Below are positions 2,241 to 57,928 of a stretch of DNA of 64,000 bases, piece after piece (within the stretch, counting starts at the first letter, position 1; every line of letters starts with the position of its first letter). The stretch is from Eutreptiella sp. 'Long Island Sound 2002' (taxonomy: Eukaryota; Protista; Euglenida): assembly GCA_964036045.1 (NCBI GenBank), contig OZ038379.1:10974001-11038000 (forward strand), in the 5' to 3' direction. The notes under the pieces are model-generated. The model ran no database searches and was not told the DNA's origin. It worked only from the letters and a program-made list of their open reading frames with translations. The translations under genes were made by a program, and so were the position numbers.

Positions 2241-2656
2241 CTCAGGCCCCCCGGCGAGTCAATGCGTGGCGCCAGAGGACAACGTTATCAATGTGGACGA
2301 TGACGAACAAGACGAGGAGGAGAACGAGAGGGACGAGGGTGGTGAAGGGGAGGAGGGGCAGGAGGAAGAGGAGGGTGAGGGGGAGAGGCGCTTCTGCCTC
2401 GGGCAGGAGCACGACAGCAGGGCTGTCAGGGAGCGGGAGGGGAGTGAGTGGCCACCGGACTTCTAAAGCAACTGCAGTGGGGCAGTGGAGCCCGCGCACA
2501 TAAACAAATACAAAGATGTTCCGCATGTTTATGTTGTGCTCTTGTTTCATGTGCAGGGTATGGATTACAGGAAGGGATGAGCCAATATTATTATTCAGAT
2601 GCAAGCGCAAACAGCGGGGGAAAAAAAAACAAGGCACAGCGGAACAATCATTTCAG

Positions 2657-6625: not shown

Positions 6626-7444
6626 ACCTCCTCTTGCAATACCCTGAACGCCCCCTCGCCATTGTAGGGGGTCATTTGCCCTTTTGTTTTTGGCAGTCAT
6701 GGCTTCGTCTCATCTCGTAGCCACCCATGGGGGACATCTGACGCGGTGCAGCGCAAGCACCGCAAATATAAGGGCAACTGGGGGCAGCCCGGCAAGAGTG
6801 GTAAGAGTAAGCACAGTGGCCGGTGCAAACCCCCTTCTGACCAGTGCTATTTCACCCAAACAACTCCAAGTGTTGCCTTTTTCAGATGCCCGCACCCCAC
6901 CTCACTCCTGGCAGGGGTTCTCAAGTTGGTAGGGCAACAGGGCCCTGCAGACACCTGCACTGCATCATGACTCATGCGCCCTTGTTTCCGGGTTTGAATC
7001 TCAAGATTCGAAGGTCGCACTCCATCGGCGCCAGGAGTAAAGCCGCGGCCTCCGAACACTCCAAAAGACCCCCCTGGTCGAGAGTCCGCACCCGGGGGTC
7101 TGACACTGATGGTTAGACACATGCCCTGTCGTGCGCTCGTATGTCGGCGGGTGGTCCTCAGAGGGGACTCATGCCCCGAAGTCAGGCCTGCGCTTGAAGG
7201 GGGTGTTGTCCCCCCCATCCCCCCATTCGGTGATGATCGTCAGTTCCGCCCCAACCACTTCTGACTGCCCCCAAATGCCCTCCAATCGTTTTGCAACCGC
7301 CAGCACGGCTACTGAAACTGCCTTCCAACCGCCAGTAACCGCACCGGCAGGCCCCTTTTTAAACTCCCCTTCAGCCTCCCTCCCCCTCAACCGCAGCCCC
7401 TCCAGAAGTGCCCACCCGCTCCACCTGCCCAACGCCTCCGGCAG

Positions 7445-7813
7445 GACTTCCTGAGGATCAATGGTGCTCGGGAAGGGGTGGCCACCACCGCCTCCGGGCT
7501 GCAGTTCGAGGTCCTGCAGACCGGCACCGGGGCGACCCCTGGGGCCACGAGCACCATCAAGGCCCACTACAAGGGCACCCTCATCGACGGCACCGAGTTC
7601 GACAGCTCCTACAAACGGGGCGAGCCCATGACGTTTCAGGTGGACCGGGTGATCAAGGGCTGGACGGAGGCCCTGTGTCTGATGCAGGTTGGCGCCACGT
7701 GGCGGCTGTACATCCCCTCGGACTTGGCGTACGGGGAGCGCGGTGCAGGGGACGTGATCCTGCCTTTCAGCACACTGATCTTTGACGTAGAGCTGCTGGA
7801 GATTGTGGAGTAA
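7445..7813 (+). CDS. Mip/FkpA-type FKBP, exon 2 (catalytic FKBP_C domain)
   Basis: A CAG acceptor at 7442-7444 is followed by [24 protein letters not shown]...[21 protein letters not shown]...VIKGWTEAL...IPSDLAYG...LIFDVELL, then TAA. Phase 0 matches exon 1 (intron 5495-7444, GT..AG). Confidence 0.92.
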
Positions 7814-10800
7814 GCATTGCGGGGGGGCACTGAGGCTTCCCTGGCAAATCTGCCGTGTCCAGCAACTCCAGGGCGTGGGGATCCCTCCTCCGGGGCCACA
7901 GATTGGATGTGGGCAGATCATCCTGAGTCTGAGATCCGATGCGGGTGGGTGATACTGAGACTCGTATCGGACGTGGGTGGATCCTACTCAATTTGAGTCA
8001 GATGCGGGCCGGGCCCCCACCAGACTGTCGGACAGCTTGCTCTGAACGGCTTAATTGCAGTGGCAACAGACCCTTTAGACCCCAATGCTCCAACGATCCC
8101 GATGGAAGGTGTGCACAACAAAGCGTCTCAAGAGATTTATATCTGACGCGCGTAACACTCACGCGGCGTTATGCCACAAGCGCATGTGTTCTGCATCAGG
8201 ACAGTGGCTTTCCGCTTCTGTCGCCCAAACTCCTGAATACCTTCTGGGGCTGCGCCACATCTTCAACTGGGGTGCTCTCCCGGCGGCTCTGCGGGCCCTT
8301 CAGCAGCATTTGTGTTGCTTCAGCATAGGGCCCACTATTCACTCGCTCTGGGCCTGCTGGGGCCTTCATGGCACTACAGGGGTCATGTCCACGGTGCACA
8401 TCACTATGAGCTCTCGATAGCAGCAGATTTTACTGAGTGGCCCGTGGCACTAATGCCTACCAGAACTCAGTCCCCCTGCCGGACACTAGACCCCCCCCCC
8501 CCCCCCCACACACACATAGTGCAGTGCAGTGCGCGGATATCAGTGGTGCTGGTGGAGGATCCACACGCACACACAGCGACGAAGGGGGGAAGGTCTCCAG
8601 CCCCAGGCTGCATTTGGAAACAAGAGGCCGAAGGAAACAAGAGGCAATTGTGAGCAGTGGCACAGACATTCCTGAGGCCATCCCCAGCGCTGAGGTGCAC
8701 GCACGTTGCGCAACTCTGTGTCTCCATGGCATCCTCATGCTCGACCAGCAACAACCTCCAACGTATGCTTCTCCATTTCCTGCATGCTTGGTCACACTTG
8801 GGCCGACATCCCACGAAGAACTTTGCTCCACTCAGTCTGGAGTGGGAAGATGTCTATGGGTTGTCCCATGGTTGATGACACTTGGGCCCATTTTACTACC
8901 ATGGCGTGTGTCCGCGTCTTTGTTGACAAGTATGATAGTTCACTCGTTTCTGAGGCCACAGAAATCCTTCCAACAGATTGCAGGTCCTGCCTGACATGTC
9001 ACATGGCGCCACAGAGTCCAACGCGAGAGTATCATTGGTGTGTCAGAAAAGTTCACTGACCAGCTGATGCGCCCACCTAAGCTGATCTTGGCACAACAAG
9101 GAGCGGGACACGGGGGAAAGGGGAACTGTCAGTTGGTGTAGGATTTATGGCCTGTGCTGCTGGAACGGATTATAATTGTCGCTTGGCAAGGGTGATTGTA
9201 CCATTCTATCAGGCCTTGGAATCATCTGCTAGGGTGGACTTGGTGCTAGAGGAGTGCCCTGCAGGGGAATGCATACAGTTTGGGAAAGGGATGGGGTAGA
9301 GGCTTGGGACAAGCTTGTGGACAGGATTTGGGGGTTTCCTGACAGGGTCCAGGCCACGGTTCGGGATTACAGCCAGGGGGTGGGGCCAGTGAAGGGGTTG
9401 GTATAGGGATTGGCAAAGGTTTGGGCAAGGGATTGGTCTGGGGCTTTGGACGGGGTTGCTGAGAGGGCTGTGTGGATGTGTTTGCAGAAGGGTTTCCGAT
9501 GGGATTCCGGATTGGGTTTGGGACAGGGACTCAGCCTAGTTTGGCACCAGGATTACTGACATGGTTTGGGATGTGGTTTGCACCGGTGTTGGGTATGGGG
9601 TTAGGGCAGGGTTTCATAGTCTGGGACAGCACCTTGCTTACCCTTCTACAGTTGCGTGTCAAGTCTGCTTTGTGGAAAGTTTGAAGCTTTTGGTAAGTAG
9701 GGAGCAAATAAATGGCTTCTCAATGGGAGCCCCCGCATGGATAGCATGGAGGCAGAGAGCAAAGGGAACATGAATCAGCAAAACTGGTTGTTTTTTGTAA
9801 AGATAAGATAAGTAGTTCCGTAAAATAAGAGACATGATCTCAGTATACATGTGTTGCAAATTCGCATATCCAATTATGCACAATGTAGTTGAGTAAAATT
9901 TGCATTTGGCAAGAGATTTCCAAGAAGTACAATCCTTATTTTTTTTTTTGCATTCCAAAATGCATGTTTGTGCAATATGGACAATTGTATGGAGCGATAT
10001 CATGGAGCCAAATCCTGTTTTGATGAGTGGAAGGACAATTTGTACAAAAACATGCAGCCTATAAATGTCATGGTGTTAACACACAAGCTGCCGCCACCAA
10101 ATGTTATCACAAAGGATCATACTTAGGTGACAAAGTTTTTGGCAGACATAAGTTAACTTACTACGAAACAAAAACTCGTTGGAGGTCTACACGCAATGGC
10201 CAAAAGAATTTCATGTGTGAGTCTGTGCTCTCCATTGGAGCATGGTAAGGCTTGATTCATGTTTAGAGAACCTTCTGCATGTGGTACAAAAAGGTAGGTT
10301 ACATGCTACACAAAGGGAAAAGTGCGGAGATATGTCCAATCTTTGTATGTAAAGATGTGTTGAACAGACATCATGTGTTGGTGAATGCTGCAATCGTAGC
10401 TTATGTTCTAAACAGAAGCACTTCTGAAAACAGTACAAGTGTTAAACCTGCGCTGCATTGGACGGTTTCCGGCGATGGTCCAAATTGGTGTCTTTGATAA
10501 GGGGCAATTGAATGTGTTCTACAAAACATCTCTCTGTTTTTTGCATTCCGAAGGACAAGTTTAGCGCAAAGAGATGTGTATCACCAACCCAACCACCAGC
10601 GCAGCTCGCACATTGTTTTGACCAATACGGCCGAGTACCCAGCAACATGCAACCCTTTTTGACCGCCGGGCATTATGCCAACCTTGCAGTATAGGATGTT
10701 GTTGCCAAACTAGTTGTCAACCCGCTCATCCTTGGCTCACGGTGTGAAATCTTCGGCATTTCGTAGAAAGGCTGCTTTTTGGAGCACACCATGACCCCTA

Positions 10801-13800
10801 TTGGCCCAGTAATAACTTGTGAGTTGCAAGCTAGGGTAAGATCTCAGTAAGAAAAAGTGTATTTCAATGCCTTTGGGGATAGCTTTAGTTGTATTAAAGA
10901 TGCCTTGAGGCTGTTGATGTGAGAGATATATGGCAAATGTGGAGCAATGTTGCTCATGCCAATGGTGAGTGGAGGGCATGCATAGAAATGGATGCATATA
11001 TGGGAATGGAATGGCAATACATACATGACATGACAATATCATACAAGCATGCACATGATATGATACATGGTAGATGGACAGGCCCTAGTGGAGCACATGT
11101 GCACTCCTATAGGTGGCAACTATTGCCAGGCATTCATGGGTAATTCCTACCCAAGTCAACCGACACATCAAGATGTATAACAAGATGAAATCATGGTGCA
11201 TGTGGTATGAGGTCGATTCATTTGTTGTTATGTCATTTTTTCCATATTATTATAACTATGCAGCCCTTTGTTGATGATTCTGGACCTATTTGAATTTCGA
11301 GATCGTGTTCTGGCCTTGCTCGTCGCCGCCGCCGCTCCTGCGCTTCATCTTTTTCTTGCTTGTTTTTGGAGTTTTAACAGAGGCATATCACATTTTTATC
11401 TTAGCATTGGCCCCACCAAAATGAGGATAATGCATTTTCACCTATAAAACCAAGCACTAATCAATGGATGTTGTGAGGACCAAATACTGGACCCCTAACC
11501 CTCCAACTATTTTGATTTTATCATAGGACCCTGAGATTACTGAGGCACTGCTCTGGCTCAGAGCATATAAATTTTTATCTATTTTTTCATGAATGCCTAC
11601 TTATCCTAGTGGTGTGCATCCTAGAGGGCTGTGGTACCTCTTTTGGATGGGTCCTAGGTTCAATTCCCAGCCAGCCTAGCTAAGTAGGAAGATCGCAAGT
11701 GACATGGCAGTGACCTCAGTGCCACAAGCTATGCCACCTCAGCACCTAACGGACCAAAAACAAAGGCTACACTGACCCTGCCTCAGAGAGGATACCCATG
11801 AGGGCAGTTTTCTATGTTGATTTGTTTGTTTTCTACCTATCTTTTCTAATAGGCAGTCACAGTTTGATCCATTGTTGTGAATACTTTGTACATGTATTTC
11901 CCTTTGACTGCAGCCCTTCATGTCTGGAGTATAAGATCCTGAATTGTGCCGTACTCGGACCGTGGATTGGGTCTTTTCCCTGGTTTCCAAAGTACGCAAA
12001 AACAAGAGGAGCAGGCAAGCAGCAAGATACAAGCAGAAGCACATCAACACAAAAACAATCATTGAAAGCATAACAATTTCTGTCCCATGGATGCATCATG
12101 CTACCCTCTTTGTCTATGGCTTTGACCATTTTGGGTCTTTGTGAAACTTTGGAAAAGGCGCCTTTCTGATTCTCTATTGTCACGTAGCTTGATACGGATT
12201 TAAGATCTCTTTCAATATATGCGCCAAAGGCAAAGAAGTTAGGTTTTCAGAACTGCTCCGGGCCTCACAGGCCATACGCTAGATTTGGGACAAATGAACA
12301 GCCGAGCCACTTGCACTACTTAGCGTATTCAGACAGCATAGTTCAAAATGCTATCGTCATAAGATTCCAAACTAAGCTTACAAAGTCATAGAGGTAAGAT
12401 TATGTATGTCATCACAAATGCCGAATATTGGACCGGCAAGAATGATTGCACGGTTCGATCAGCCTCAACGGGGCTCATCTGCACTCTTCCTGCCTTTTCG
12501 ATGAAAAACATCGGTCCGGCATTCGCACCCCCTTCATCCTTCAACTCATCCCCCCGCCCTCCGGACATTGTTGCAACTCAAGTTCATGACTAATACGGAA
12601 AAAATTATTGAAATAATGCGGGTAGTTAGATTGTAGCTGTATCCGTCCAGGCTATTGTTCCTTAATTTTTTTTGGTGTGCATAAGTGCTTTTCGGTGATA
12701 CATTGTATACATTTTTGTGGGCCGTTTCTTTGATTTGTGATGCATGGGCATAACTTTTTGGGGTGCACAACACGAAAGCAACCTTAGTAGGGGTGTAAAA
12801 GTGGTCATGGCGAGCTAAACTTCATCAAGGACAACAACCATATGTATGGCAACTCAATGGATTAGACCCTGCAACATAGCAACAATCTTTTGAATGGTCT
12901 GGGTTGTCATGCCATCGGCTTCCTATTTTTATTGAGCGCAGAAAATAAAATGGTCCAAAAATTTTAGGTACATGGTGGCGGCAGAAGGGGTGGGAGGGAT
13001 GACTTTGGTGGGGTATGTGCAAGATGAACAAGAGATCATGTTTCGAGAAAGAAAAGGAGAAAACCCCCAAAGTTCCTATAAAATTAGTTTGAGGCGGAAA
13101 CTTGCCTGTCACAAGTAGAGCTTAGGTTGCTTCTATTTTGAAGGGTTGGGAGTTTGCGTCTTGTGTCCTTTGGTGGCAGGGGTTGGTGGGTAGATGCGGT
13201 GGGTGCCTTGGCAAGGGGCTTTAGGGCTTGGTGTTTCAATGTTTTTTTTTCTTTTATACTATGGACCTTGCTGAGTAGAGGTGTTGGTTGTGAGGATGTG
13301 TTAATGTTGTTTCTGTTGGAAAAGAGAAATTGGTGCGGGAAAGGAAGTGCTATAGATGGATGGGGATATTTCTAATAGTTGCTAACAAAGTCTCGTTAAA
13401 GTGTGTAGATGTGTGCAGACTTTAGTGTGCATTTGTGTTGCAAATAAGGAATATTTGGAGATAATACGGGAGTAGGTTGCCGAACGAGAACATTTGGAAT
13501 GAGAATTCGGTCGCAGTTGCTTCTGTCACCTAGTGATGCAACGGTCCCCTATCCTGTGTCAGTTTTGATGAAGAAAAAAAGTCCAAACATGCAATCGCAT
13601 TTGTTTGAGGTGTTCGGCATTGTAACATTGCAAAACATTGGTTATTGGGTCCAGGGAACGGTGTAGAAAGCATTTGGGGTGGTGGACAATGTTGCGAACA
13701 CTGGCCCGGTACCTTGCACAACAATGGACGGTTTGACCATTGAAAACGGAAATGAGAGAACCAAGATATGCATGAACACAAATCACTGCAAAAGCAGAGA

Positions 13801-15859
13801 TGTAAATTGTCGTGTGCGTAGGAAAAGAGTTAGCTCCTTGACAGTTGTTGAAATGGTTTTCCAAGAAAAATGTGTGGATATGCTTGAATTGTTTCTGTGT
13901 TGCTTTGTACCTCTGCAACTGCCTTTTGCCCGGTAAAGCCCGCTCCTCCCTTCAACTCTTGACCTCCCGTCCTAACAAACCAAAAGCATCCCCCTCAACT
14001 TCTTTTTGGTCAACATCTTTTTGGAATATGCCCTAAATTCCCCTACCATATCGCTGTGGGCTATGCCATTAGGTGGAAAACGTGTACATGCATTTGTTGT
14101 ATCACGATAATGTACTGTTTGCCGTTTGTGAAAACCAATATCCAGCTTGACAAAAAAAACCCACTGTGGGTATCTTGGGCCATGATGGTTTTTTACCATT
14201 TCTTGCATCAAAATTTCTGATTGATGTCCTCGGCTGTCCTTTGGTGGTGTGTCAAATACGCTGCCCTGGGTGCTTTGGTGTCTTTCTTAAATATTAACAA
14301 AATATTAAACATTAACAAAGAATGATTCTACATGCACCATTTTCTGTCCATCAAACAAATCTAAAAGCATTCCATCTGCAAAAAAACCCAAAAAAAAACA
14401 CATGGTAGCCAATTTTTCTAATGTGCATGTGGTTGTAGATGCATGTGCTGATTTGATTCATGCAATCACTGTTTTGTGAGAAATAAAAGGTTACACATGC
14501 TCTATAGGGTTGTGCTGTGCTAGACTGATCCAACACTGCTTCATCAAATGACAAAAGTGATGTGTTTTAAATGTGTTGGCCGCACACAGGTCAAAGAGCA
14601 CTCCACACATGCACGTCCTGGTATGCATATGCAGCAATGTTCGGCAGCTTTCACAGCTGTACTCAATGCACAGCTCTCCAATGTAGCTCCATGTTCTTGA
14701 GATGGCCGTGTTTGTCAGCCACAAACTCTGGCTTGCCTGCTATGTACATAGGATACCTCTATCTTGCCATCAGGTCCCTGCACATAGGCAAATGTGTTGG
14801 CGAGGCGTGTGCTGTCTCCCCTGCATACTGACCTGTCGCCACTCCCTGTCTATTTACCGCTGACAATTGGCAGCTCTGCCAGGCGCTGAGCCATCCATCA
14901 TGGATCGAAAATGTTTCAAGCCAAAAAGACAAACTCCATATCCAGTGGCGCTCGGGAACACCATTAACAACCAGCATCAGCCAATATCAATAAAATCAAT
15001 GCATCACAGGCAAATACAATTTGCTAGCATAATGGGTACTCAGGGAAATGTGATATTGATACACCGTATGTGGAAAAAAAACTGCACTGTCCAGTAAGTG
15101 GGTCGAGAAATCAGAGCTTTCAAAACAGTGGTTGGCCAACACCACAGACGATGCATGCAGACTGTGAGGCCACGTAGACTGCCCGTATTCCCACACAACA
15201 GTTGGGTCTCATGGCATTCTGTAAAATTATTACATCACATGTAGAATAAGGCTGCACTGTCCAGCAAATGGGTTAAGAAATTAGACCCCTCTGCAGAACT
15301 TTCAACCCAGTGGTTGACTACAATACCACAGACAATGCATGCATACTGCGGAGCCATCATGTGGAGCGCTCATCGATCCCCTCATACATGACGGGACGGA
15401 GAGCACTATGGTGCTGCACCACAGGCTTTGTGCTGTTCCATGCAGAAGCGGGAGACAGCCAATAAGGAGATACTGATCATCAAACAGATCAGATGTGGGC
15501 CGACCTCACACGACCACAGATCAATGATGCAGATGGACCCAAAACTGTGGGTCATTGTGGAGCTGTTGGCACATGAAATGTTTTGCCAGAACACCAGAAT
15601 CAGGATGAATGTACTGGTCAGCCCCAAAGCGAAGTCTACATGCCTACACCCGAAATTGGCAGCACCGTCTGGGCAGGGGGGGGGGAGGGGGGCTGAAAGG
15701 CCTGGGACTTCTGACTTGATTGGTGCTGAAAATTGCGGCATTGATATGACTTTGCGTGTGTCAGGCAGTTGGGCCAGGAGAATGCTTCACACGAGCAAGC
15801 GCTGACAAGCCCCCTACAAAGTGGCACCATTGTTAGGATTGGGTCAGTGTCCAGTAGGG

Positions 15860-18482: not shown

Positions 18483-18766
18483 CCTTGCCCACAGCCTCCA
18501 AACAATCCATGGTGCATGGACGTGCCCCTCAGCCTGCTTACTGCGCGACTTATGGGGATCACGTGTCCTTGCCCACAGCCTCCAAGCAATCCTTGGTGCA
18601 TGGACGTGCCCCTCAGCCTGCTTACTGCGCGACTTATGGGGATCACGTGTCCTTGCCCACAGCCTCCAAGCAATCCTTGGTGCATGGACGTGCCCCTCAG
18701 CCTGCTTACTGCGCGACTTATGGGGATCACGTGTCCTTGCCCACAGCTTCCAAGCAATCCATGGTG
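18483..18766. repeat. 84-bp minisatellite, ~3.4 copies
   Basis: CCTTGCCCACAGC starts at 18483, 18567, 18651 and 18735; the whole unit is repeated, with no unique spacers. Confidence 0.95.
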
Positions 18767-19224
18767 TATGTCAGACCTTACACCAAGTCCCCTGTGAAGC
18801 CCAGTTTCTAATGCACTGCATGTTGTGCACACCAAGATGTGCCATTAAGCGACCTTGAGAGAAAAACCTAACATGTGCAAATTCAGCTTGTGTGTCGCTG
18901 TCCTATATGGAACACCCAATACAAAAATGATAAGCAAGGCATCTCCCCTTCAATAGCATTGTGGAAATGGGGAGGAATGGGCCAAAACCAAATGCTTTGC
19001 TTGCCCAAAAGCAAGCGCTCAACGTCCATATATTCAGCATCCAATATGCTACACAGTATGCACATGGAAAGTGTAACACATGCTCCCACCCAAAGGGTTC
19101 AAACTGGGTGAGAAACACAGAAATGCTTTTCTGTGCACAAATGGCCAGAGACAGTCCGCCAGCAGGTCGAACTTACGCACATACGAAGGGTGATGACACG
19201 CATTATCATCCCATCCCGAATTGA

Positions 19225-36008: not shown

Positions 36009-36083
36009 CTCGTGTTTTGTGCTTGCTCAAAACACTGGTTTAACTTAATTACCTCTTCATTAGGCATTTGTCAGTTTGTTCCC
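36009..36083 (+). repeat. Split direct repeat A1
   Basis: CTCGTGTTTTGTGCTTGCTCAAAACAC...GTTTGTTCCC. Confidence 0.95.
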
Positions 36084-36091
36084 TTTTTGCC

Positions 36092-36769
36092 ATGTCTGGG
36101 CTTCACGGGAGCAGCGGGATGCAAGAGGACGCAATTTTTGTGTCCGACGATTCACACGCGGAATCGGGTACGGCCAAGGAATTGGCCGAGTTGAAGGCCA
36201 TGCTCCGTCGACAGGATGCGGAGGTGGAGCGCTTGAGGGTACAATTAGCCGCCACGGAGATTGAAAAGCGCGAGGACACGGAAATCCCGGACCTCAACTT
36301 GGATGGGATAGAGGAGTTTTTGAAGAAGGAAAGAGTCACGGTTTGGATGAAGGATGCATGTGCGGTATTAAAGCAGTATGTGACGGCGGTTCCGAAGCCG
36401 AGTAGGCCAGCAGACGTGGGAGGTAAGCAAGGAGAACAATTAAGTCTCGGAGATGCGTTGGCGTACAGAATGTGGAAAGTCCTCATTGTTGCACATGCGA
36501 CTTACGTGAAGAGGTATTCGCCGGGACAAGCATCGGGGCCCAAAGGAAAGTCGGAAAATTTTGATGAGGCCATGGCGAGTGGCGGGGATTCCTGGAGATA
36601 CAAGAGTATTCAATTCAAGAAACGGGACGGGGTAGCCTACTGGTTATCCAAGGCCGGAGACTGGATACCGGTGGACGCACAACCCAGCGAAGATTGCCGT
36701 AGATGCACGGCGGCGGGAAAGCTGGAGAACTTGCGGTACTGGTGTTTCCGGTGCCCATTGTGGTCGTGA
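36092..36769 (+). CDS. gag: Gag-like ORF of the YR retrotransposon
   Basis: ATG at 36092, directly after A1. Has a coiled-coil segment (ELAELKAMLRRQDAEVERLRVQL) and a C-terminal CRRC-x10-YWCFRCP knuckle resembling CxxC..HW...C. It occupies the ORF1 position. Confidence 0.7.
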   Translation: MSGLHGSSGMQEDAIFVSDDSHAESGTAKELAELKAMLRRQDAEVERLRVQLAATEIEKREDTEIPDLNLDGIEEFLKKERVTVWMKDACAVLKQYVTAVPKPSRPADVGGKQGEQLSLGDALAYRMWKVLIVAHATYVKRYSPGQASGPKGKSENFDEAMASGGDSWRYKSIQFKKRDGVAYWLSKAGDWIPVDAQPSEDCRRCTAAGKLENLRYWCFRCPLWS

Positions 36770-38488
36770 CGAGAAAACCCGTGGCGGTATCGGGATGCCG
36801 TCGCGGGGATCGAACCACCGGGAGAGCAGAGGCCGACGTACCGGTGGTTGGCGCTTGAGTTTGAGTCGCACCGACGTGAGGAAGAACCCACAACACCTGT
36901 GGGTGTTGCAATTCGGGGTTGGAAGCCGTCTACGACGGCTGGATACGCGTCCAGTTTGCGAAGGTTGGGAGACCTTGAGGAATCCTTGGGAGAAGAGGGC
37001 AACTTGCCTTCCATCCTATCTCGGAAACTCGCTCAGCACGTTCAAAATGGTGGCAGCTCAAGTGGGGCGAGAGGCATCATCTCGGTAGTGCGGGCTTGTG
37101 AAGACCTCCAAATGGTTGCAGGGGTCGTCAAACCACTGCATTGGCGGCTTGCTAAAGCGGGGGCCCAAGCGGGAGTCCAAGAATATGCAAGTCCTGTACT
37201 GCTGCGTCATTTGGTGGATAGAACGACTTCGGATGGCGAAAGGGCGGTCGTGGCAATGGCCCTGGTGTCATATGTTTGTTTTCTTAGAGTGGCGGAGGCT
37301 GCTAGCGTACGTGTTGGGGATGTACGTGACAGCAGTTATTTGGTTTTTTGGAATAGTAAGACAGGACATGAAGGGTGGCAGAGGAGGCCGGTGCCTCCTT
37401 GGGTCAGGCCGTTTGTTGAGTGGCTTCACGACTGGGCTGAGGGACGAGGGTGCGCCAGGGACGACTTGCTCTTTCCTGCAGGGGCTCCTCAGCTCGAGAA
37501 AACAATGGCGGACTTGGTGCGTGGGACGGCATGGTCCCGACATCGGTGGCACTGTTTCCGACGTGGAGGAGCTGCAGCGTGCTGGAAGAGAGGACCGGCC
37601 CTGCCTCATTTTAAATGGTGGGGCAGATGGGCAGCAACGGCGACGGCAATGGCGTATGCGCTTGGGTACCGAGATGAAGAGGTTGTGGCCCCGCTTTGTC
37701 TACCACAGGTTTGGGGTTCCGTATCAGCGGCAGCTTTCGCGGATCCGCAGCAAGTATGGGGAGACATCATGTTCGATGAGCGGCATCAGGACAAAAACCG
37801 GCCGGTGTGGGGCCGGAGCGAGCGACGCCGAGCAGCGCCCAGTATGTTCAGGGGTAAGAGATTTGCAGGGGAACCGAGATCTGATGCGGCAGACTTGGGC
37901 AGTTCATCGGAGGACACGGGATCAGGAGTATCGGCCGATGATGGGCCGAGTGTGCGTTCGGGTGTCCGGAGGACTGCAGAGGTTGTTCCAGCGCCAGAGG
38001 CAAGAAGGAGTTCAAGAGCAGGACCGACGATGGGGAGGCCAGGTGTCGCTGAGCGGGGACTTGCGGGTCCTGCCGGTCCACTCCCCAGCGGGGGATCGGA
38101 TGCCAGCGATGCAGCGAGTGCTGGGCAGCAAGTGCCCGGCAATGGAGGAGAGAGGGCAAAGTTCAGATTCACGGCGCCGCCGCCGGGACGACCAAAGGCG
38201 CCAACGAAGTCGGGGCCATGGCGGTCAGCCGCTGAGCCTGCCCGAGGGCACCGAGGAGTCAAGCGTACGGTGGGTGGCAGAGCCCTTTCAGTACCAGCAG
38301 GCCGGAAGGGTGGCGCGGCGGTGGCGGTGGCGACGCCTTCAACGAGACGCCCGGTTACCACAAGGGTGGCGGGAGCTACACGACGACCGCGGCACAGCGA
38401 TGGAGAGTCCGGACCGGGACGGAAGCGATCCAGGACTCTACCCAGTGGAGCCGGCAGCACCAGGGGGGGGGCTCGCCAGCAACGGTGA
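36770..38488 (+). CDS. Tyrosine recombinase, in frame with gag across a single TGA
   Basis: WKPSTTAGYASSLRRL (core-binding helix), FLRVAEA (R), NSKTG (K), WHCFRRGGA (HxxR), WGRW (W) and AMAYA (catalytic Y), followed by a long low-complexity tail. Confidence 0.9.
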   Translation, partial: RENPWRYRDAVAGIEPPGEQRPTYRWLALEFESHRREEEPTTPVGVAIRGWKPSTTAGYASSLRRLGDLEESLGEEGNLPSILSRKLAQHVQNGGSSSGARGIISVVRACEDLQMVAGVVKPLHWRLAKAGAQAGVQEYASPVLLRHLVDRTTSDGERAVVAMALVSYVCFLRVAEAASVRVGDVRDSSYLVFWNSKTGHEGWQRRPVPPWVRPFVEWLHDWAEGRGCARDDLLFPAGAPQLEKTMADLVRGTAWSRHRWHCFRRGGAAACWKRGPALPHFKWWGRWAATATAMAYALGYRDEEVVAPLCLPQVWGSVSAAAFADPQQVWGDIMFDERHQDKNRPVWGRSERRRAAPSMFRGKRFAGEPRSDAADLGSSSEDTGSGVSADDGPSVRSGVRRTAEVVPAPEARRSSRAGPTMGRPGVAERGLAGPAGPLPSGGSDASDAASAGQQVPGNGGERAKFRFTAPPPGRPKAPTKSGPWRSAAEPARGHRGVKRTVGGRALSVPAGRKGGAAVAVATPSTRRPVTTRVAGATRRPRHSDGESGPGRKRSRTLPSGAGSTRGGARQQR

Positions 38489-39560
38489 CCAGCCCCTGGG
38501 CTCCCCCTTGAGAGTGCCTGGGATTCTGGGGGGTTGGGTGGGCACGGAGGCTGGCCTGCATCTTAAAGGTGGAATTCTCCTGACCATCATGGCTGTGCTG
38601 ACCCAACACTTCTGGTGGCTCAAGTGTAGGCTACAGTGTGCAGTAGGGGTTCTGGTGCGTCGTCTGTGGATACTGTTGAATCACATTATTTCTGTTTGTG
38701 AGGACTTTCGGTTGGATGAGCCACTGGGGATTTGCCTGATGGCAGTACAGTACCTCTCGCCAGGGGTTTGGGATTCTGTTAATCACCTCTCCACCTCTCC
38801 CAAGCCTAGGGAAGCGAAGGTCACCCCGGAGATTTTGGAGGCTGGTATAGGTAATGTGGGGTGCTATGCGATGTCTGAAGCGGAATGGGATGCTGCGGTG
38901 CCCCCGGAGTTTTTGGAATTCATGAGAACTTTTGATCTGCGGGAGGCTGACAGGGGAAATGGGAGGGTGCGAGCAACGGTGAGTGGAATGACGGACGCCA
39001 TTCGAAGGACTGGTGTTTTACATGATGAATCACCCTCTCTACCGCCAACCTGTTTTCCTTTTGTAATACCCAAAAATGATATTAAGTGCTCCTTGATTTT
39101 AAGTTGCGTGGGTATTCACAGGGGATTGCATCTCAAGCCACCAAAGTTTTCACTAGCGTCTTGGGAGGGAATAGGTAGATGGATGGCGGAGCAGCCGGCT
39201 GGGGTGGAACTGTACGGTACTCATATCGACCTCTCTAATGCCTTCTGGTCGTTCCTGTTACCCAGAAAAGCGAGGCGAATTTTCCGCTTCTTTACCCACC
39301 AGAAGGGGGGGCTCGTGTCGCTGGACCGCCTCCCGTTTGGGTGGGCCTTTTCGCCCTATCTGTGTCAGGAGATATTGGGGCGGGTGGTGGGAGATGCAGT
39401 GCCGGATGGGGTCTTTTTGGTGCATTACTTGGATGACTTTATTTTGTTATCCAGCGACAAACCCCTGCTTGGGACAACCACGAGTCACTTGAAAGATCGT
39501 ATCGTGCGGGCGGGATTCTTGGTTAGTGCTAAGAGCACACTGAGCCCCGTCCAGAATTGC
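38400..39560 (+). CDS. Reverse transcriptase (frame open from 37098; plausible ATG at 38400)
   Basis: FVIPKND, HIDLSNAFW, RLPFGWAFSP, HYLDDFILL and GFLVSAKSTLSP are DIRS-type RT motifs. Confidence 0.92.
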
Positions 39561-40429
39561 TACAGGCCTTGGGGAAGGTGGTTGATTTGAAAGAACGTTC
39601 CATCCAAGTGCAGCCTTTTGTGTTCCTCCAGTTCCTGGTTGCGTGGTTGCGACTGGCCACGGGGGGGTACTCGAAGCGGCGGCTGGACAAGCTGCTGGGT
39701 ACCCTGCAGTGGCATTTGCGGCCACGACGCGGGTTTTCAGGGGTGCTCGCAGGAGCGTATGCCTGGTCGAGATTTGGACCGGAAAGGGCGCCAGCCACCC
39801 CTGTTAAAGTGTTGGAGGGATTGGCGACAGCAATTGCGCGCATAGGCCAGAAGTGGAGACCGCTGTCGGAGTCGCGCATGCGAAGGGTATGGCAGCTGGG
39901 AGGTTGGTGCCTCTCTGAAAGGCCGGCATCTAGAGGCGATTTGTTTGGGGCTGTGATATTGGTGGATGCCGCCAAAGACGGTGTTTGCTACAGGGTGGGT
40001 GGTGTGTTGCCTGCTAACCAGTCTGTGCGAACATGGGTATGCCCGGACGGACCCTGTAACCAGCAGGTGGCGGAGCTCATGGGCATAGCGTGGGCGGTGA
40101 GATTGGCGGTGCGGTTGGGTTGGAAGGTTTTCACTGTCTTCGCCGACAGTATGGTGGGCATTGCTCAGGTGAGGGGTTTGAAGGCAGCATCCCATCTGCG
40201 TACCCAGTTGCGTGTGTTGCGCGCACTGACGTGGGTGCTGTATAACACAGGAGTGATAGTACGTCTAATTTGGGTGCCGTCAGAGCTTCATCCTGCCGAT
40301 CCAATGAGTCGAGTGGACATGGATTTCGGGGGGCGGGTGCACCAAGCTGAGTTGGAGGCGTGGGAGAGATGGCGAGTATTGCAGAAGTATCCTGAACTCT
40401 GCTGGGTGCAAGGCCTAGCTTATGTATGA
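39557..40429 (+). CDS. RT connection plus RNase H (DIRS-type), shifted -1 relative to RT
   Basis: LQALGKVVD, LLGTLQW, ILVDAA (D), QQVAELMG (E), VFADS (D) and WVPSELHPADPMSR (D). Confidence 0.88.
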   Translation: MLQALGKVVDLKERSIQVQPFVFLQFLVAWLRLATGGYSKRRLDKLLGTLQWHLRPRRGFSGVLAGAYAWSRFGPERAPATPVKVLEGLATAIARIGQKWRPLSESRMRRVWQLGGWCLSERPASRGDLFGAVILVDAAKDGVCYRVGGVLPANQSVRTWVCPDGPCNQQVAELMGIAWAVRLAVRLGWKVFTVFADSMVGIAQVRGLKAASHLRTQLRVLRALTWVLYNTGVIVRLIWVPSELHPADPMSRVDMDFGGRVHQAELEAWERWRVLQKYPELCWVQGLAYV

Positions 40430-40480
40430 CGCCCACCTGGGTCGCGCCGCGGGTGTCAGAAGCCAGCCTGGTAAAGCTTT

Positions 40481-40612
40481 CCAGTGAGCCGAGGCAAGCA
40501 TTGTTTAGTATTGTTTCGTGCATGCACTAGGGTTAAACTCGTGTTTTGAGCTTGCTCAAAACACTGGTTTAACTTAATTACCTCTTCATTAGGCATTTGT
40601 CAGTTTGTTCCC
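40481..40612 (+). repeat. Internal B1-A2 junction (copy of the circle junction)
   Basis: CCAGTGAGCC...TAGGGTTAA-A-CTCGTGTTTTGAGC... Confidence 0.93.
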
Positions 40613-41000
40613 CCCCCCCCCCACCCCCTGCCACTAATCGGGGCGGGTTTCTGCCACACTTCATAGCTGTTTTGTGGAGTGGGAGCGGTGGGATGTCCAG
40701 CTTAAGAGCGACAGTAGTGGGCGCAGGGGGGGGGGTTTGAAGGTGAGAGGGTGGCCTGCTCTGACCCCACCCACCCACCCCCTGCCGCGATTGAGTTGCA
40801 TCCGCGCATGACCAGCTATGATGGGCAGGGACGGGGCACTGTATGTTGAATGTATCTTTGCTTTCGTCGGCGGGACATGACAGAATACGCGGGTGAGTGA
40901 GTGCGTGAACGTGTGGGTATTGGTCGGGTCCCCTGCGGGGAGGCGAACGCTGTCGGTCACAACGATGTTATACTGGCCACTACGGTGGCAACTGAACAGG

Positions 41001-41056
41001 CCAGTGAGCCGAGGCAAGCATTGTTTAGTATTGTTTCGTGCATGCACTAGGGTTAA
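41001..41056 (+). repeat. Split direct repeat B2 (right terminus)
   Basis: Identical to 40481-40536. Confidence 0.95.
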
Positions 41057-41574
41057 GCTTAAGGTTTTGTATTTGTCTCTTGAAGCAAGGATGAACATAA
41101 ACCATCCGAGTGTCACGCATCATGAAGCTTTGAGGACATGGATGGGCTGCATGTGTCTCACCCGCATATTGTGCTTTGGAATCAACGCAAAATGATGGAG
41201 TGCAAGCACCGATGTTAGTAGCAAGTGTCATAAAGTTCAATTGCATAGTACGTAGGTGTTTGCCCTCATGCTGTAAATGCTAAAGGGAGGGCATTTCAAT
41301 ACTTTTGCACCCACCGTAAACCCAATTGTCTGCTCGTGCCGCTACTCCGCAGCTACTCCGCAAAAGTTCTTGTGTCATGACGCTACGCTTGTTAGTTCAC
41401 AAAATCATTGTTTTCCATTATTTAAATTATGTATTATGTATGTTCATGTATTACATATTATTCATTTCGTTTATTTACATGTAAAACGTGCAAGTAACCC
41501 GTTTTACCGGCACGAAAACGGGCTATTAACCCGTTTTTCTCGGCCATGTAACCCGTTTTACTGCCGAAAAAATA

Positions 41575-42160
41575 GGTGCTGTTTCTATTTTGTTTTTGGT
41601 TGCAAAGGCAATGCCATAGACTCCGGGTACCATGGACGCATCCCTACAACCCTTGGACTCGAGTCCGGAGACTCCACCCCAATAGGCTATGGTCCGACAG
41701 TCCAATCCCCCATCGTCCTCAGCATATGTATGCCTTGCAACAGAAGACATATTAAGGATGACTCTATGTATCTGGCATATTCATCACCAAGACCATGTCT
41801 TATGTGACTGCACTACATTTGGTACCGAATTCAAGTAGGTTTGAAATAAATACGGTCCCTACTTACTGTGGCATGGACAAGGGCGTGGCTATGACAAAGG
41901 CGAGGGGTACCTTGTTACCTTGTTTGACACAGCCACCTACCATGAGCTACTGCATCACTACTACGGAAACCTACTATGGAAAGGCACACAAACGGTGTTG
42001 TTTCTATTTTGTTCCTAGTTGCAAAGGCAATGCCTCAGACTCCGGGTACCATGGACGCATCCCTACAACCCTTGGACTCGAGTCCGGAGACTCCACCCCA
42101 ATAGGCTATGGTTCGACAGTCCAATCCCCCATCGTCCTCAGCATATGTTTGCCTTGCAAC
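41575..42160. repeat. ~165-bp direct duplication (41575-41740 and ~41994-42160)
   Basis: TTGCAAAGGCAATGCC..AGACTCCGGGTACCATGG...CAGCATATGT.TGCCTTGCAAC is present twice. Confidence 0.9.
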
Positions 42161-53359: not shown

Positions 53360-56072
53360 GAAATGTCGAAGTCCTTGTTGCGAGGAACCACGTCTCCTAG
53401 TGCTCCGGATTGGGCAAGCCTATTATTCTAGATCAATGCCCACCATGTATGCGGAATTCGAGAATTATTGTAGCTACATCTCGATGGCCGAGTTTCCTAA
53501 GAGGCGAAGCACGTCAACACGTAGAAATCATTAGGAAGCTATAGCCTCTATTATGAGCCGTCACGCAAGGAGCTACACTCGCTACAGTAGTTACATTAGG
53601 AACCCTTGTTATTTAGGTCCCTCTCGTGGACGTTCTACGAAATCTATACACGAAGAAGGCAATATCCATGGGAAGGGTTACCGGCCTGAATTGTTATGCA
53701 AAGGAAAGGGTTGCATCTCAATAGTCCCAGTTGGTGAGGCCTTTTTGTGTGATATTTTGGATGTGATCACCCAAACCGGAAAAACGTCAAGAGGCAAAGG
53801 AACAGATGCTGGCTATCCTTGTGGCTAGGATGGTTGAGCATACGTAGCACGTACAAAAATATAGGCGCAAAGGAAGGCGTGTAACGCTTAAAGATTGAGA
53901 AACAACCCATTTGTGGGTCGGGAAACACTGGATGATGCAATGCACAAAGCACTCACTCATCTGTTTCAGCTTTTTGCTAGTTGAACGCTTTCTCTTTGGG
54001 TTTTGCAACAACTTGACCCCCCTTGTTTTGGTGTTGTGATTGTTGGACCTTCGTTGGCTCCCCTTGTGTCTTCATTCACTTGGAAGACAGCCCAAAGTAG
54101 TGACAAAAGTTTCGATATGCAGCACTCCTGCGATGAATTATTTCCGGATTTCCCGATATCGATTACTTCGTGTGAAAATGCAACTTATGTTCGACAGCAC
54201 ATCTAGCAAATAAATTTTCAATCGGAGAAAAAATTGGCATGCCTTCCGAATAACAAAATTTACCTGAGTAGTTGTTCTGTGCAGGCCGCGCACGCGACTC
54301 GAGTACCGTTACTTTTGGTTCACTACCACGTGTAAATCACCGTTCAGCATCTTTGTTTTTCAATATATATATCTATATATATATATACATATATATCTTT
54401 TTATTATTAGTATTTATGTACATTTTTGTGTTGTTCGTCATGGTAATTAATTGGCCATGAATTGGGAATTTAGCATGCATGGCTTCATGCATGGGCGTGA
54501 CACATTCTTTGGCATCTTCACACAACTTGACACATGTGGATGCGCCAAGTGGCGGTTGCTGACACGCAATTTCAACCCATTTTGAGGAAAATGTCAACAT
54601 TAGACAACGGGAATGCATTTGTTTATTATTTAGTCGTGTTGACACTGCAAATTGAGTTGACCAATATGCCGCAAACATGCAGATCAAGACCCGCCTTTCA
54701 AGTATTACACCTTCTCTTCGGGGACTAGGCGATGTGATCCCCCCTGGATTAGAGTGGTGGAACCCTCCCAATGGACCGGATCACAGATTGGACATGGATA
54801 TGACCCCCCACCCTCCTAACCCCCCCAAAATGGATTAGAGAAAAAAATCCAACAAAGACCGTACGCGCGTGTACTGCCATGGAAGCCCCAACCACCAAGT
54901 CTTCCTGAACTTTCCAACGTAGAGCCACGATGGGAGGCCACAAAGAGACAGGCACATGGCAAAGCAAATACATCCTTGACCATGCTAAATTTGAAAATTC
55001 CAAATTAGGTGCCCAAAGATGAACTTGCCAAGCAGCATTGGGCAGATCACTCATGAGTCATGCTATCTTTGGGGGTCTTGAAGATGATGCGAGCACTACA
55101 AAGAACAACAAAGTTCTCGATCCATAAAGCAAAACTGAAGCAAGTTCCTAATGGACAACAAATGCTTGGTTTGCAACATTGCACACGTGTACACACACCA
55201 CACACATGCACACACAACACAACAACGGTGAATGAGAGCCAAGGAGCCATGGACACCGCACACACCCCCACACAACACACGCACGGCGCACCGCAACAAA
55301 CAATCACCAAAGTTCTTGATGCACAATAAAGTTCCTCATTCATAAATGCAAAATTAATGACATGAAGACACGTTACCACGAAGCACACAAACTAATTGCC
55401 CAATGAAAGTTCTTGATTCTTCCAAAAAAAAACATAGCTACTATCCACACATCATCCACATCATCAACTTGCCACAATCCAAAATGCATCAAACGAGATT
55501 GGAGGGCTAGATTGGATTGATTGGAGGGCTAGCAGATAGCACAAAAGCAAAAGACAGTGCACATTGGACCAGGCGAAAAAAATTAGACACTCAAAAAAGA
55601 CAAGCGTGCACGCCCATAAAAATGGATCAGGGTGTTGACCCCCCCCCCCCCCCCCACTCCCCAAGGACCAGATCATGAATCGGGATTCCCCCCCCACCCA
55701 TTCGACTCCCCTTCAAAATATCCTTCAACCATCTTTGCTACCACCCAAGAAATGATGCCCTCTGCCACATCTCCACGGAAAACCTTTTGTACCTTTTGTA
55801 CCTTTTGTTGTTGCACGTCGGAAGACGTGTTGGCAAGGGTTTGGATTGTACTTGCCTATTCCTATAACCTTCTACAGATTACACGGTGGGGGGCGGCAAA
55901 CCGGGGCATGTTTATTTTGTTTATTTTGGTTGATTGGCTGGTGGTTGGTGGTTGGTATACATGACCAGTTCGCTTGCCTTTCATCGTGTTGCACGCGACG
56001 TTTTGTCAATACCTTCACACTTTCATCAAGATTTTGTGCCATGGGGTCGTGCGGATCCACTTCGTAGACCAG

Positions 56073-57392
56073 ATGGTTCATGGGCGTGCGGCATGGGTAC
56101 TCTTGACGTGGTTGTTCGTGAGCGCCTCGGCAAGCCCATTCCGATACGCCACGATCAGTTACCAACGCGTGAAGGAGCCGGGGCACACTTCTTGGCAAAC
56201 CTCGAACACGATCGAATTCTCGTCGACCTTTGCTTTTAATGCCTCGGAATTCGGGGAGGAAGACTTTGCGCCTGGGGACCCCTTTTCATACGGTGACCTT
56301 GTCATGCACTTCGGCGACGCGCAGTCAACCGCTTTTTCCAACGAAACTTGCGTCGTTACGTTGCACGATGACGTGGAGGACGTGGTCATCACGCAATGCA
56401 AGGTCACGCACACATACAGCCCCGTAGCGGTCGCGGCCTTGGACAACAAGGCCGCGGCGTACGTGGAGACGTGCTGCCGGCCGGTCGAGTTGCAGAACAA
56501 CCCGAACACCACAATGCGGATTGCCGCCGGGGTCGATTTCCGGAGCAACGCGACGTCCGGCATGGTGCTGGGGACGACCCCCACGGTGCGGATCTTCGTG
56601 CCGGTGGGGGAGCACAACTTCACGTTCACTCCGGTGCTGATGGCCGACCCCTTGGGGCGGATCCCTCACTTTCGGTTCGCCACGAGCCAAGAAATGAGCG
56701 GCAGCGCAGAGGGCTCGGGGGCCCCGGACGGCATGACCATCGACCCCGTCACGGGGTCCATCACATGGGTCAACGCCACGGGGACGGTCAACGGGGGCCT
56801 CTACAGCCTCCAGCTCGTCGTCACCGACGGCGACCGGACCGCCGCCGTGGACTTCCTCGTGGAGCTGCACCACCTCGGCCGCCGCTGCGACGACGCCTCC
56901 GGGGCCTTCGCCGGGGTCGCGTGCGGCACCTCCGCGGAGTGCGGCGCGGGCGGCTGCGCGCTGCCCGACATCCCGACGTTCGTCGCCCCGTCACCGCCCG
57001 CCGGGACGCGGTACGTGGCACTGGTGGGCGCCGCGCGCAACCTCTCCGTTGCCGCGCGCTCGCTGTCCTCGCATCCCGGCGGATACCTGGTGATGTCCCC
57101 GGGCTCAATTCCGCTGTATTTCGGGCCTCCCCGGCAAACCGGGCGCAACCCCCTGCAGCATGTCCACACGCTGTCGCCCTCTGTCAACCACACGAGCCCT
57201 GAGATCGTGTGCTGGACGGCCACGTGGGTGAACACGTCGGTGTGGGAGATGACCACGTCGCTGCCGTACTGCCTGCAGGTCCAGCCCCTACTCGCCCCCT
57301 CGTACAGCACGGCCCCGCCGTCCGTGCACGGCTCCCAGGAGTTCGCCATCTATTTCGAGGGCCAGGCCTTTGCGGAAGGCGATCTGTTTCAG
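56073..57392 (+). CDS. Large secreted/surface protein, exon 1: signal peptide, PKD-like region, He_PIG/cadherin-like Ig module and short Cys motif
   Basis: MVHGRAAWVLLTWLFVSASA is signal-like. It is followed by SPFRYATISY, YVETCCRPVELQNN, PDGMTIDPVTGSITW...YSLQLVVTDG and CDDASGAFAGVACGTSAECGAGGC. Third codon positions are strongly G/C-biased. The exon ends at CAG|GTGAGT (phase 0). Confidence 0.8.
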
Positions 57393-57928
57393 GTGAGTCG
57401 CCTCCTTCGCCTCCTTTGGCCCGTTGTGAGGGCTGCGGTGTGGCTATCCATTTAGTGCCCCTTACCCCCAAAACGTAATGCCCCCACCCCCTTCGCAATG
57501 GTGCCCCGGTCCTTTAAAAGGCATGCGTGCCCAAAAACACATGTACCCCCCCCCACACACACACTACCCCTGACAAGGTACGTCTACCAAAGGTTCCACC
57601 TACACCCTCGCTTAGCTCCCCGTAATTCGGTTTTACCACACACACACACACACACACCGCAGAAGGGGAGGGTCCAACGTTCCACAGAGGCCTCAGCAGT
57701 CCTGAGCCAAATGGGGCGTCCTGCCCAGCGCTGCACAAGGATCCACCTCTATAAGTACAGATCACACACACACACACACACACATTTCATTCCCACTCCT
57801 TTTTGAAATCATTTGCCTTTGAGTGGTTGCAATCCAGTAGGTGGGTGGGTGGGTAGGTGGGTTTGTGAAACATGGTAAGTCTACCAAAGGGCCCACCTTC
57901 GCTTAGTTCCCCTTCATCAGGTCTCAAC

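Follow-up and report, generated by a model that had tools for sequence, protein, structure and literature searches.

The stretch of DNA analysed here (the window; 64,000 nt of contig OZ038379.1, positions 10,974,001 to 11,038,000, numbered below from its first base) contains one tyrosine-recombinase (YR) retrotransposon, which occupies 36009-41059 on the + strand and is laid out as A1, open reading frames (ORFs), B1A2, spacer and B2, where A and B are terminal repeats that each occur twice. Its genes follow one another on the + strand in the order gag-like, YR, reverse transcriptase (RT) and RNase H (RH), and the 64-kb window holds this single copy of the element. We consider it probable (roughly 0.8) that this is a non-autonomous copy with one 2-base frameshift, that its architecture is that of the VIPER/TATE elements and that it belongs to a large unnamed clade of elements from uncultured microbial eukaryotes. 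Three arrangements are conserved across lineages whose RT/RH proteins are 25-43% identical: a gag ORF that ends in TGA with the YR ORF continuing in the same frame, an open +1 frame for RT/RH, and a hairpin at the B1/A2 junction. The in-frame gag-TGA-YR, the stop-free +1 frame across YR, the covarying junction hairpin and the size and depth of the clade are what the analysis adds to the original prediction. Related copies, to which the list below already refers by handles such as L002, are described in a later section.

Boundaries and repeats of the element

The features of the element are as follows.

36009-36083, + strand: A1, the 5' terminal repeat; 74 of 75 positions identical to A2, and ~89% conserved in sister subfamilies with ~68% coding identity
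36092-36769, + strand: ORF1, gag-like, 225 amino acids; frame-2 codon-position substitution pattern against L002 and L004
36767-36769, + strand: TGA that ends gag, with YR following in frame; putative read-through stop, at the same place in six lineages
36770-38488, + strand: YR ORF, identified by a weak Pfam match, conserved residues and a fold model; its tail is poorly conserved
37089-39590, + strand: reading frame of RT/RH, shifted by +1 from that of gag and YR and overlapping the YR ORF; open from 37089 in this copy
39557-39558, + strand: two extra bases relative to L008, L002 and L004, a frameshift in the RT thumb that splits RT from RNase H
39559-40429, + strand: end of RT, and RNase H, read in frame 2 in this copy; stop codon TGA
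40481-40539, + strand: B1, the internal copy of the 3' terminal repeat; 58 of 59 positions identical to B2
40530-40575, + strand: hairpin (palindrome) across the B1/A2 junction, 46 nt; -23.7 kcal/mol, z = -7.0
40538-40612, + strand: A2, the internal copy of the 5' terminal repeat, located with the repeat finder
40613-41000, + strand: spacer separating A2 from B2, containing tracts rich in C and in G; alignable with those of relatives
41001-41059, + strand: B2, the 3' terminal repeat, ending ..TTAAGCT; the final CT is also the first two bases of A

Both repeat pairs were delimited with a repeat finder; they are direct and not inverted, and they are not simple long terminal repeats (LTRs). Within the window, exactly two occurrences of a 30-nt piece of B were counted, and none in 100 shuffles. 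B1 adjoins A2, the dinucleotide CT being common to both, and A2 and B2 are 388 bp apart. The original prediction had described a near-complete YR retrotransposon with the gene order gag-YR-RT-RNaseH and A1..B1A2..B2 split repeats, and the repeats, domains and motifs that this requires were all located. The predicted length of A (75 bp) was correct, while B measures 59 nt instead of 56 and the element ends at 41059 instead of 41057. "Near-complete" is an apt description, as the two extra bases at 39557-39558 are the sole coding indel relative to the 96% identical copy L008.

The spacer between A2 and B2 had been called unusual, which does not hold: every family that we found has one (94-388 bp), and in Trypanosoma cruzi VIPER the SIRE sequence likewise consists of A2, a short unique piece and B2 (PMC6681497). 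The window spacer aligns with those of L005 and L006 at 80-91% and with that of L002 at 74%, and because it is conserved among copies we count it as part of the element. The predicted lack of a methyltransferase was borne out: no such domain was matched by Pfam in the element, and there is no room for one, because RNase H ends at 40429 and B1 begins at 40481, leaving only 51 nt between the RH stop and the repeat. No DDE integrase (rve) or endonuclease domain was found in the element either, and scans of the window and the related loci against Rfam (gathering thresholds) and for tRNAs returned nothing.

Gag-like protein, tyrosine recombinase and RT/RNase H

The gag-like ORF encodes an N-terminal coiled coil (36173-36253) and a C-terminal CX2C-X12-CX2C motif (36695-36754). 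It had no Pfam or NCBIfam match, and an exact look-up of the window protein found no record. In the distant relative L009, a CCHC knuckle stands where the window has CX2C-X12-CX2C.

The catalytic region of the YR lies at ~37280-37669. The Pfam Phage_integrase model matched the protein with E=0.015, which is below threshold. The residues expected of a YR are present: Arg in FLRVAEA (37280), Lys in NSKTG (37352), HxxR (37544), Trp (37619) and Tyr (37646-37669). In an alignment with relatives down to 38% identity, the FLRVAEA Arg was kept in all rows except the degenerate fragment P0185 (Gln), the Lys in SKTG was invariant, RWHxxRRGG supplied the His and Arg, and the rows that extend far enough had a GRW motif and the Tyr-bearing segment AMAYALGY. 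The AlphaFold model of the YR was poor (mean pLDDT 52). When this model was compared with the PDB by Foldseek, the best 44 matches, and 49 of the best 50, were tyrosine recombinases, with Cre first and XerA, lambda Int, XerD and IntI also among them. PDB sequence searches with the YR, either as a single protein or as a profile, gave nothing. Taken from the conserved residues and a low-confidence fold model, the YR assignment appears sound.

The conserved RT domain (~38580-39556) was matched by RVT_1 with E=1.4e-12 and contains motif A (IDLSNAFWS, 39225), motif B (LPFGW, 39330) and motif C (YLDD, 39426-39437). RNase H was matched by RVT_3 (E=3e-4) and weakly by the NCBIfam RNase HI model. Its D/E/D/D motifs span 39962-40312, namely VDAAKDG at 39962, QQVAELMG at 40061, FADSM at 40139 and VPSELHPADPMSR at 40274-40312.

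YR and RT/RNase H overlap in two reading frames

We determined which frame is under constraint by counting substitutions per codon position between the window and related copies. Frame 2 was constrained from the start of gag to ~38100, frame 0 from ~38150-38260 to 39556, and frame 2 again thereafter. The first switch is not a lesion, because it is common to all subfamilies, whereas the second is one, because the window has two extra bases there relative to L002, L004 and L008; they lie in the sequence KSTLSPVQ / LQALGKVVD. A frame change at ~37820, which the protein of L001 had suggested as a further lesion of the window, was rejected, as the alignment places a 2-nt insertion in L001. That insertion merges the YR and the downstream frame of L001 into one ORF (P0006), and an internal deletion in the same copy (L001 6400-10760) joins the RT thumb to B.

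Gag ends in TGA, and the YR ORF starts directly after it in the same frame, in the window, L008, L002, L003, L009 and L010. Coding constraint continues beyond this TGA: between the window and L002 the changes right after it are mostly synonymous and 22 of 28 residues are identical, and similarity to L003 begins 22 codons past the TGA, which is upstream of an ATG present at that point in the L002 subfamily. Other in-frame TGA codons are absent from the 3688 codons of intact ORFs (0, versus 119 TGG codons), so TGA is a genuine stop codon in this group. It also terminates all three ORFs of the window copy (gag at 36767, YR at 38486 and RT/RH at 40427) and those of the relatives, except that the YR of L010 has TAG.

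Across the YR ORF the +1 frame is depleted of stops. Observed stops compared with the number expected from codon shuffling were 1 versus 13.8 in the window, 1 versus 14.8 in L008, 1 versus 13.9 in L002, 3 versus 9.9 in L003, 0 versus 14.3 in L009 and 0 versus 8.5 in L010. By the same test, stops were not depleted in gag or in the +2 frame. At the protein level this +1 stretch is not conserved, which suggests that what is maintained is an open frame and not a particular sequence. The RT/RH gene as called in L009 and L010 begins 23-29 nt before the gag stop. The YR profile matches only the overlapping frame, not the RT/RH protein itself.

Related copies and their phylogeny

We searched 1.84 billion representative proteins by HMMER with the RT piece and obtained 677 matches at E <= 1e-3. 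The best matches, and all close matches that word-indexed searches gave for YR and RT/RH, came from the ENA metagenome assembly ERZ25074135 (contigs of 50 kb to 5 Mb, 31-45x). The related copies are as follows.

L008: 96% identical copy with intact RT/RH; starts with A1 and ends after a single B
L005: 91-93% identical copy, interrupted by a 4-kb transposon with terminal inverted repeats (TIRs); bounded by A1 and B2
L006 and L007: 80-86% identical partial copies with incomplete ends
L002, L004 and L001: a subfamily ~68% identical in the coding region; L002 has a full A1, B1A2 and B2, L004 and L001 are incomplete
L003: a family with 41% RT identity and its own A1, B1A2 and B2
L009: a family whose RT is 28% identical, with both its RT/RH and its YR ORF intact; has its own A1, B1A2 and B2, both repeat pairs 100% identical
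L010: a relative from the Logan assembly of run SRR31154554, on a contig too short to include the ends

The RT/RH protein of L008 (P0191; 1051 amino acids, intact, 96% identical) represents a cluster of 40 members. The order gag-YR-RT/RH was also found in L002, L003, L008, L009 and L010. In the L002 subfamily the A repeat and the B end are ~90% identical to those of the window, far above the conservation of the coding region. It had been set in advance as a test that other copies should share the A and B ends, and the result supports the predicted boundaries: L005 and L002 end as the window copy does, and the sister families L003 and L009 have ends of their own. The element had also been called young. 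Its repeat pairs differ by 1.5%, which agrees with this; the copy is nevertheless broken and the nearest sampled copy is 96% identical. L009 (4744-9820) has an A of 96 nt and a B of 45 nt, both pairs 100% identical, a spacer of 94 bp and a 4-nt end overlap (AAAC), and from its sequence it looks recently active. After the single B of L008 there is no A2-spacer-B2 in the next 5.9 kb (9269-15156), so that this end may be an A..B deletion form or may reflect insertion at the junction; the flank contains GGTAACA-type repeats and, from 13965, a piggyBac-type transposase (DDE_Tnp_1_7). The ~4-kb DNA transposon within L005 (3971-7973) has 36-bp perfect TIRs and many GTTATCGCG subterminal repeats.

In a tree of RT/RH, for which the RT and RH pieces of the window were joined with XXX at the break, 28 relatives formed one clade (100% SH-aLRT), apart from the DIRS1-like and Gypsy elements of the same assembly; a long branch parts the clade from Gypsy Pol. 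The YR-first layout was checked in three subclades of this 28-row clade. In line with the suggestion that the family may be undescribed, no protein search returned a named or described relative. Cluster look-ups of 20 distant matches led only to unnamed ENA, Logan and JGI proteins, and a word-indexed search with the RT/RH profile gave only the ENA kin and a few Gypsy Pol proteins at E ~1e-7. The protein searches returned no kinetoplastid proteins, and a scan of bacterial and archaeal genome contigs for the element found nothing; contaminated metagenome-assembled genomes have been reported to hold VIPER/TATE.

The DIRS1-like element of the assembly lies at L011 5041-9722, adjoining the L001 copy. 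It comprises gag, RT and a YR with a strong Phage_integrase match, and has two pairs of inverted repeats. Its RT/RH is <=22% identical and falls outside the clade, and its YR was not seen by the YR profile of the clade. A chromovirus-type Gypsy Pol lies on the - strand at L011 1-3258, also beside the L001 copy.

These data bear on whether the layout could be a chance chimera, in which a Crypton-type YR transposon or a YR gene landed in an unrelated RT element or was placed there by an assembly artefact. The RRGG box is common to this YR and to Cryptons, and the YR has no detectable similarity to that of the DIRS1-like element in the same assembly, both of which a chimera would accommodate. However, six lineages, one of them from a second data set, have gag-TGA-YR within a +1 RT/RH ORF, even at RT/RH identities as low as 25-30%, and independent copies end identically. 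A nested insertion is further disfavoured because YR and RT/RH share nucleotides in two frames. We regard the chimera as close to refuted.

Junction hairpin and element ends

The lower stem of the hairpin across B1/A2 pairs the end of B with A, and the upper stem lies inside A; the first base of the element is therefore the base of the stem. The first ~30 nt of A1 (36009-36038) correspond to the upper part of the hairpin. The junctions of distant families were folded one by one, and the same hairpin design with a different sequence was found in L003 (z = -5.2) and in L009 (z = -6.7). We set aside the idea that the palindrome is the core site of a Cre-type recombinase or of a telomere resolvase, as the element ends lie 15 nt off its centre.

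No target-site duplication was present at the flanks of the window copy, L002, L003, L005, L008 or L009. In the copies, B ends in ..TAAAC(T) and A begins with the last 1-4 of these bases (C, CT or AAAC), so that the shared string of 1-4 nt stands at both ends of the integrated element and once at the internal junction. Such a short string at each end would be expected if the junction of a circle recombined with a target that has a few bases in common with it.

A proposed life cycle and the points against it

How might such an element be expressed and mobilized? A full-length RNA would run from A1 to B2. Gag would be its main product, and occasional read-through of the UGA would yield a Gag-YR fusion, while ribosomes would arrive at RT/RH either by shifting to +1 or by initiating internally, and would translate through the overlap with YR. 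The ends of the cDNA would then be joined, with the internal B1A2 as guide, into a closed circle with one B/A junction. This model, in which the internal B1A2 junction serves as guide, is the one proposed for the DIRS1, PAT and Ngaro elements; the circle model for DIRS1 and the split-repeat elements reportedly goes back to Cappello and colleagues and to Goodwin and Poulter. The B/A junction of the proposed circular intermediate would read ..TTAAACTCGTG.. and the YR would recombine it with a target that has just 1-4 bases in common with it (C, CT or AAAC). For this reason nothing would be duplicated at the target. The junction hairpin may act in cis as a signal, either in forming the circle or in recognition by the YR.

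Several observations weigh against the interpretation given at the outset or against parts of the life cycle. Read-through, frameshifting and circle formation are steps that we infer from sequence. In the L002 subfamily the YR domain opens with an ATG, and its translation may therefore also be initiated independently of gag. In L008 a +1-frame stop lies 82 nt after the gag stop, and a shift at the very end of gag therefore cannot be the rule in its subfamily; another +1-frame stop is found at 37086 in the window copy. The B/A boundary does not coincide with the centre of the hairpin, from which the element ends are 15 nt away, and the hairpin therefore does not resemble a simple Cre-type core site. 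The identity of the YR draws on a sub-threshold Pfam match, conserved residues and a model of mean pLDDT 52. Finally, RT motif C does not match that of VIPER/TATE, a difference to which we return in the comparison below.

Host context

The window contains only 10 ORFs of at least 250 amino acids in 64 kb, three of them from the element, and has no long same-strand gene arrays. ERZ25074135, the assembly with the 96% identical copies, also contains a Gypsy chromovirus, the DIRS1-like element, piggyBac-type and TIR DNA transposons, and split genes such as a cyclic nucleotide (cNMP)-binding gene in pieces. From the low ORF density and these transposon classes, the host is likely not a kinetoplastid. 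The window and ERZ25074135 may come from the same species, judging from the 96% identity. The original prediction of a non-kinetoplastid host thus stands in part: the mobile elements and split genes of the assembly point that way, indirectly, and the host itself is one that we infer. A search for the dinoflagellate spliced leader was negative.

Could the element nevertheless be an ordinary VIPER/TATE copy in a kinetoplastid, for example an unsampled free-living bodonid? The identical architecture would fit, and Bodo saltans is known to hold diverged VIPER and TATE copies (PMC6681497). The sparse ORFs and the missing same-strand arrays do not, nor do the chromovirus, the DIRS1-like element, the piggyBac-type and TIR transposons and the interrupted cNMP-binding gene of ERZ25074135. 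Surveys of trypanosomatids and Bodo recovered only four retroelement clades, CRE, INGI, VIPER and TATE (PMC12278014). RT motif C is moreover unlike that of all kinetoplastid copies, those of Bodo included. We consider a kinetoplastid host very unlikely.

Other features of the window

A Pfam scan of 148 window ORFs matched only an exon of a Mip-type FKBP, a SIBA-like protein and an ORF with a zf-C17orf113 domain. The first is an exon-like ORF at 7316-7810 (+ strand) for an FKBP of the Mip/FkpA type (FKBP_N and FKBP_C), whose nearest solved structures are Legionella Mip and E. coli FkpA, followed by T. cruzi MIP; this closeness to bacterial proteins gives no clue to the host. The SIBA-like (integrin-beta-like) ORF at 55965-57452 (+ strand) has a He_PIG Ig domain. 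The zf-C17orf113 zinc finger belongs to a 561-amino-acid ORF at 781-2463 (+ strand), which may derive from a transposase.

Repeats were found both beside the element and elsewhere. Directly 3' of it, in the segment 41575-42563, a 167-nt sequence is repeated with 95% identity (41575-41741 and 41994-42160), and a unit of 141 bp forms a tandem array (2.8 units). Another tandem array (84 bp, 3.4 units) lies at 18483-18770, and in L003 an 83-bp array abuts A1.

Comparison with known systems

The published description of VIPER/TATE comprises a gag-like ORF, overlapped YR and then RT/RH ORFs, A1..B1-A2-B2 repeats and no target-site duplication (PMC6681497; PMC12278014), and VIPER and TATE have been reported to be monophyletic by RT (PMC6681497). 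The window element agrees with this description in all architectural respects, as had been predicted for its gene order and split repeats: gag-like, YR and RT/RH lie on one strand, the YR and RT/RH ORFs overlap, A1 forms the 5' terminus and B1-A2-(spacer)-B2 the 3' terminus, and there is neither a methyltransferase nor a target-site duplication. The element is thus VIPER-like in architecture and probably also in the way it works. Box II of the YR reads RRGG, as in the Bodo VIPER/TATE copies and in Cryptons, and RT motif B has the G-aromatic-xx-SP pattern of VIPER in an alignment that we read by eye. The RNase H shows the weak hepadnavirus-like affinity that has been reported for VIPER-like RNase H: 6 of 30 RT/RH relatives had weak matches to Pfam DNA_pol_viral_C, the C-terminal domain of hepadnavirus polymerase, whereas none of the 30 matched the Gypsy RT_RNaseH models.

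The differences from VIPER/TATE concern mainly the RT. Motif C reads YLDD here compared to [WMY]IDN in all published kinetoplastid rows, including Bodo, again by eye, and all 120+ relatives with a recognisable motif keep YxDD, apart from one fragment, P0041, which reads YLDN. Motifs A and B differ as well; those of the clade, D[LI][ST]N[FA][FY]WS and LPFGWxxSPx[IL][AC]Q, are words absent from the published VIPER/TATE rows. The repeats of trypanosomatid VIPER/TATE are longer (136-414 and 219-308 nt, versus 75 and 59 nt here), while those of Bodo saltans VIPER are of similar size (83 and 57 bp). The genome of the window element seems to be rich in other transposon classes and not to be that of a kinetoplastid. 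Neither an in-frame gag-TGA-YR nor a junction hairpin is mentioned in the VIPER/TATE papers (PMC6681497, PMC12278014).

We therefore asked whether the element could belong to an independent lineage that resembles VIPER/TATE without being its closest kin, that is, a fifth superfamily-level group of YR elements whose gene order is convergent or ancestral. The divergent motifs A, B and C and the absence of the clade's motif words from VIPER/TATE would be expected of such a lineage, as would the lack of kinetoplastid proteins among those relatives whose origin was looked up, and recurrent origin of structural traits has been described for YR elements (PMC4157794). On the other hand, the match extends to every architectural trait, including the overlapped ORFs and the missing duplication, and the RRGG box, the motif B pattern and the weak hepadnavirus-like matches of six relatives recall VIPER-like elements. 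An independent origin is possible, though less likely than not. More tentative still is the idea that the clade forms a deep lineage of YR retrotransposons, of superfamily rank and so far undescribed, with a wide distribution among uncultured microbial eukaryotes, and that its RT motif B (SPxLAQ) and RNase H tail (VPSxLxPADPxSR) reflect an ancestry shared with hepadnavirus polymerase. The RNase H tail VPSELHPADPMSR and motif B, LPFGWxxSPxLAQ, resemble what we take to be the corresponding motifs of hepadnavirus polymerase, with hepatitis B virus compared by eye. The signature of such a lineage may be a single stretch of DNA with a YR in the gag frame, reached by UGA read-through, and an N-terminal extension of RT/RH in the +1 frame, together with the junction hairpin. 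If this were true, the clade would be a candidate cellular relative of the lineage that gave rise to VIPER/TATE and to the hepadnavirus RT/RH.

YR retrotransposons are the least understood order of retroelements, and the YR-first layout has so far been treated as a peculiarity of kinetoplastids. Here a diverse YR-first clade turns up in what is likely a genome of another kind and across several sources of metagenome data, with some copies, such as L009, that look intact. This would mean that the layout is either old and widespread or has arisen repeatedly. Such a clade is also clean material for two questions, how two products that branch after gag are expressed and how the circular junction is rebuilt from split repeats; neither is settled for any member of the order, and ordinary experiments could test both.

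With Ngaro and PAT elements the window element shares the split direct repeats A1..B1A2..B2, a presumed circular DNA and YR-mediated integration without duplication, and with Ngaro also the lack of a methyltransferase. It differs from both in the position of the YR, which in Ngaro, PAT and DIRS1-like elements lies downstream of RT/RH (inverted in Kangaroo), whereas here it is found upstream, embedded in the 5' portion of the RT/RH ORF; PAT-like and DIRS1-like elements also carry a methyltransferase (PMC4157794). DIRS1-like elements are likewise YR retrotransposons with a gag-like ORF and overlapping ORFs, but they have inverted terminal repeats and an internal complementary region, and their order is gag-RT/RH-YR. 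Compared to Gypsy elements, the window element has no LTRs, no DDE integrase, no match to Gypsy RNase H and no 4-6 bp duplication. Cryptons consist of a YR only, with no RT, while here an RT/RH is present and occupies some of the same nucleotides as the YR ORF. Stop read-through in the gammaretroviruses, and a +1 shift in Ty1 and Ty3, set the ratio of structural to enzymatic protein, and the proposed expression of the element would be of the same kind. In contrast to retroviral and LTR gag-pol, however, YR and RT/RH would here branch from one point and be read from two frames of the same DNA.

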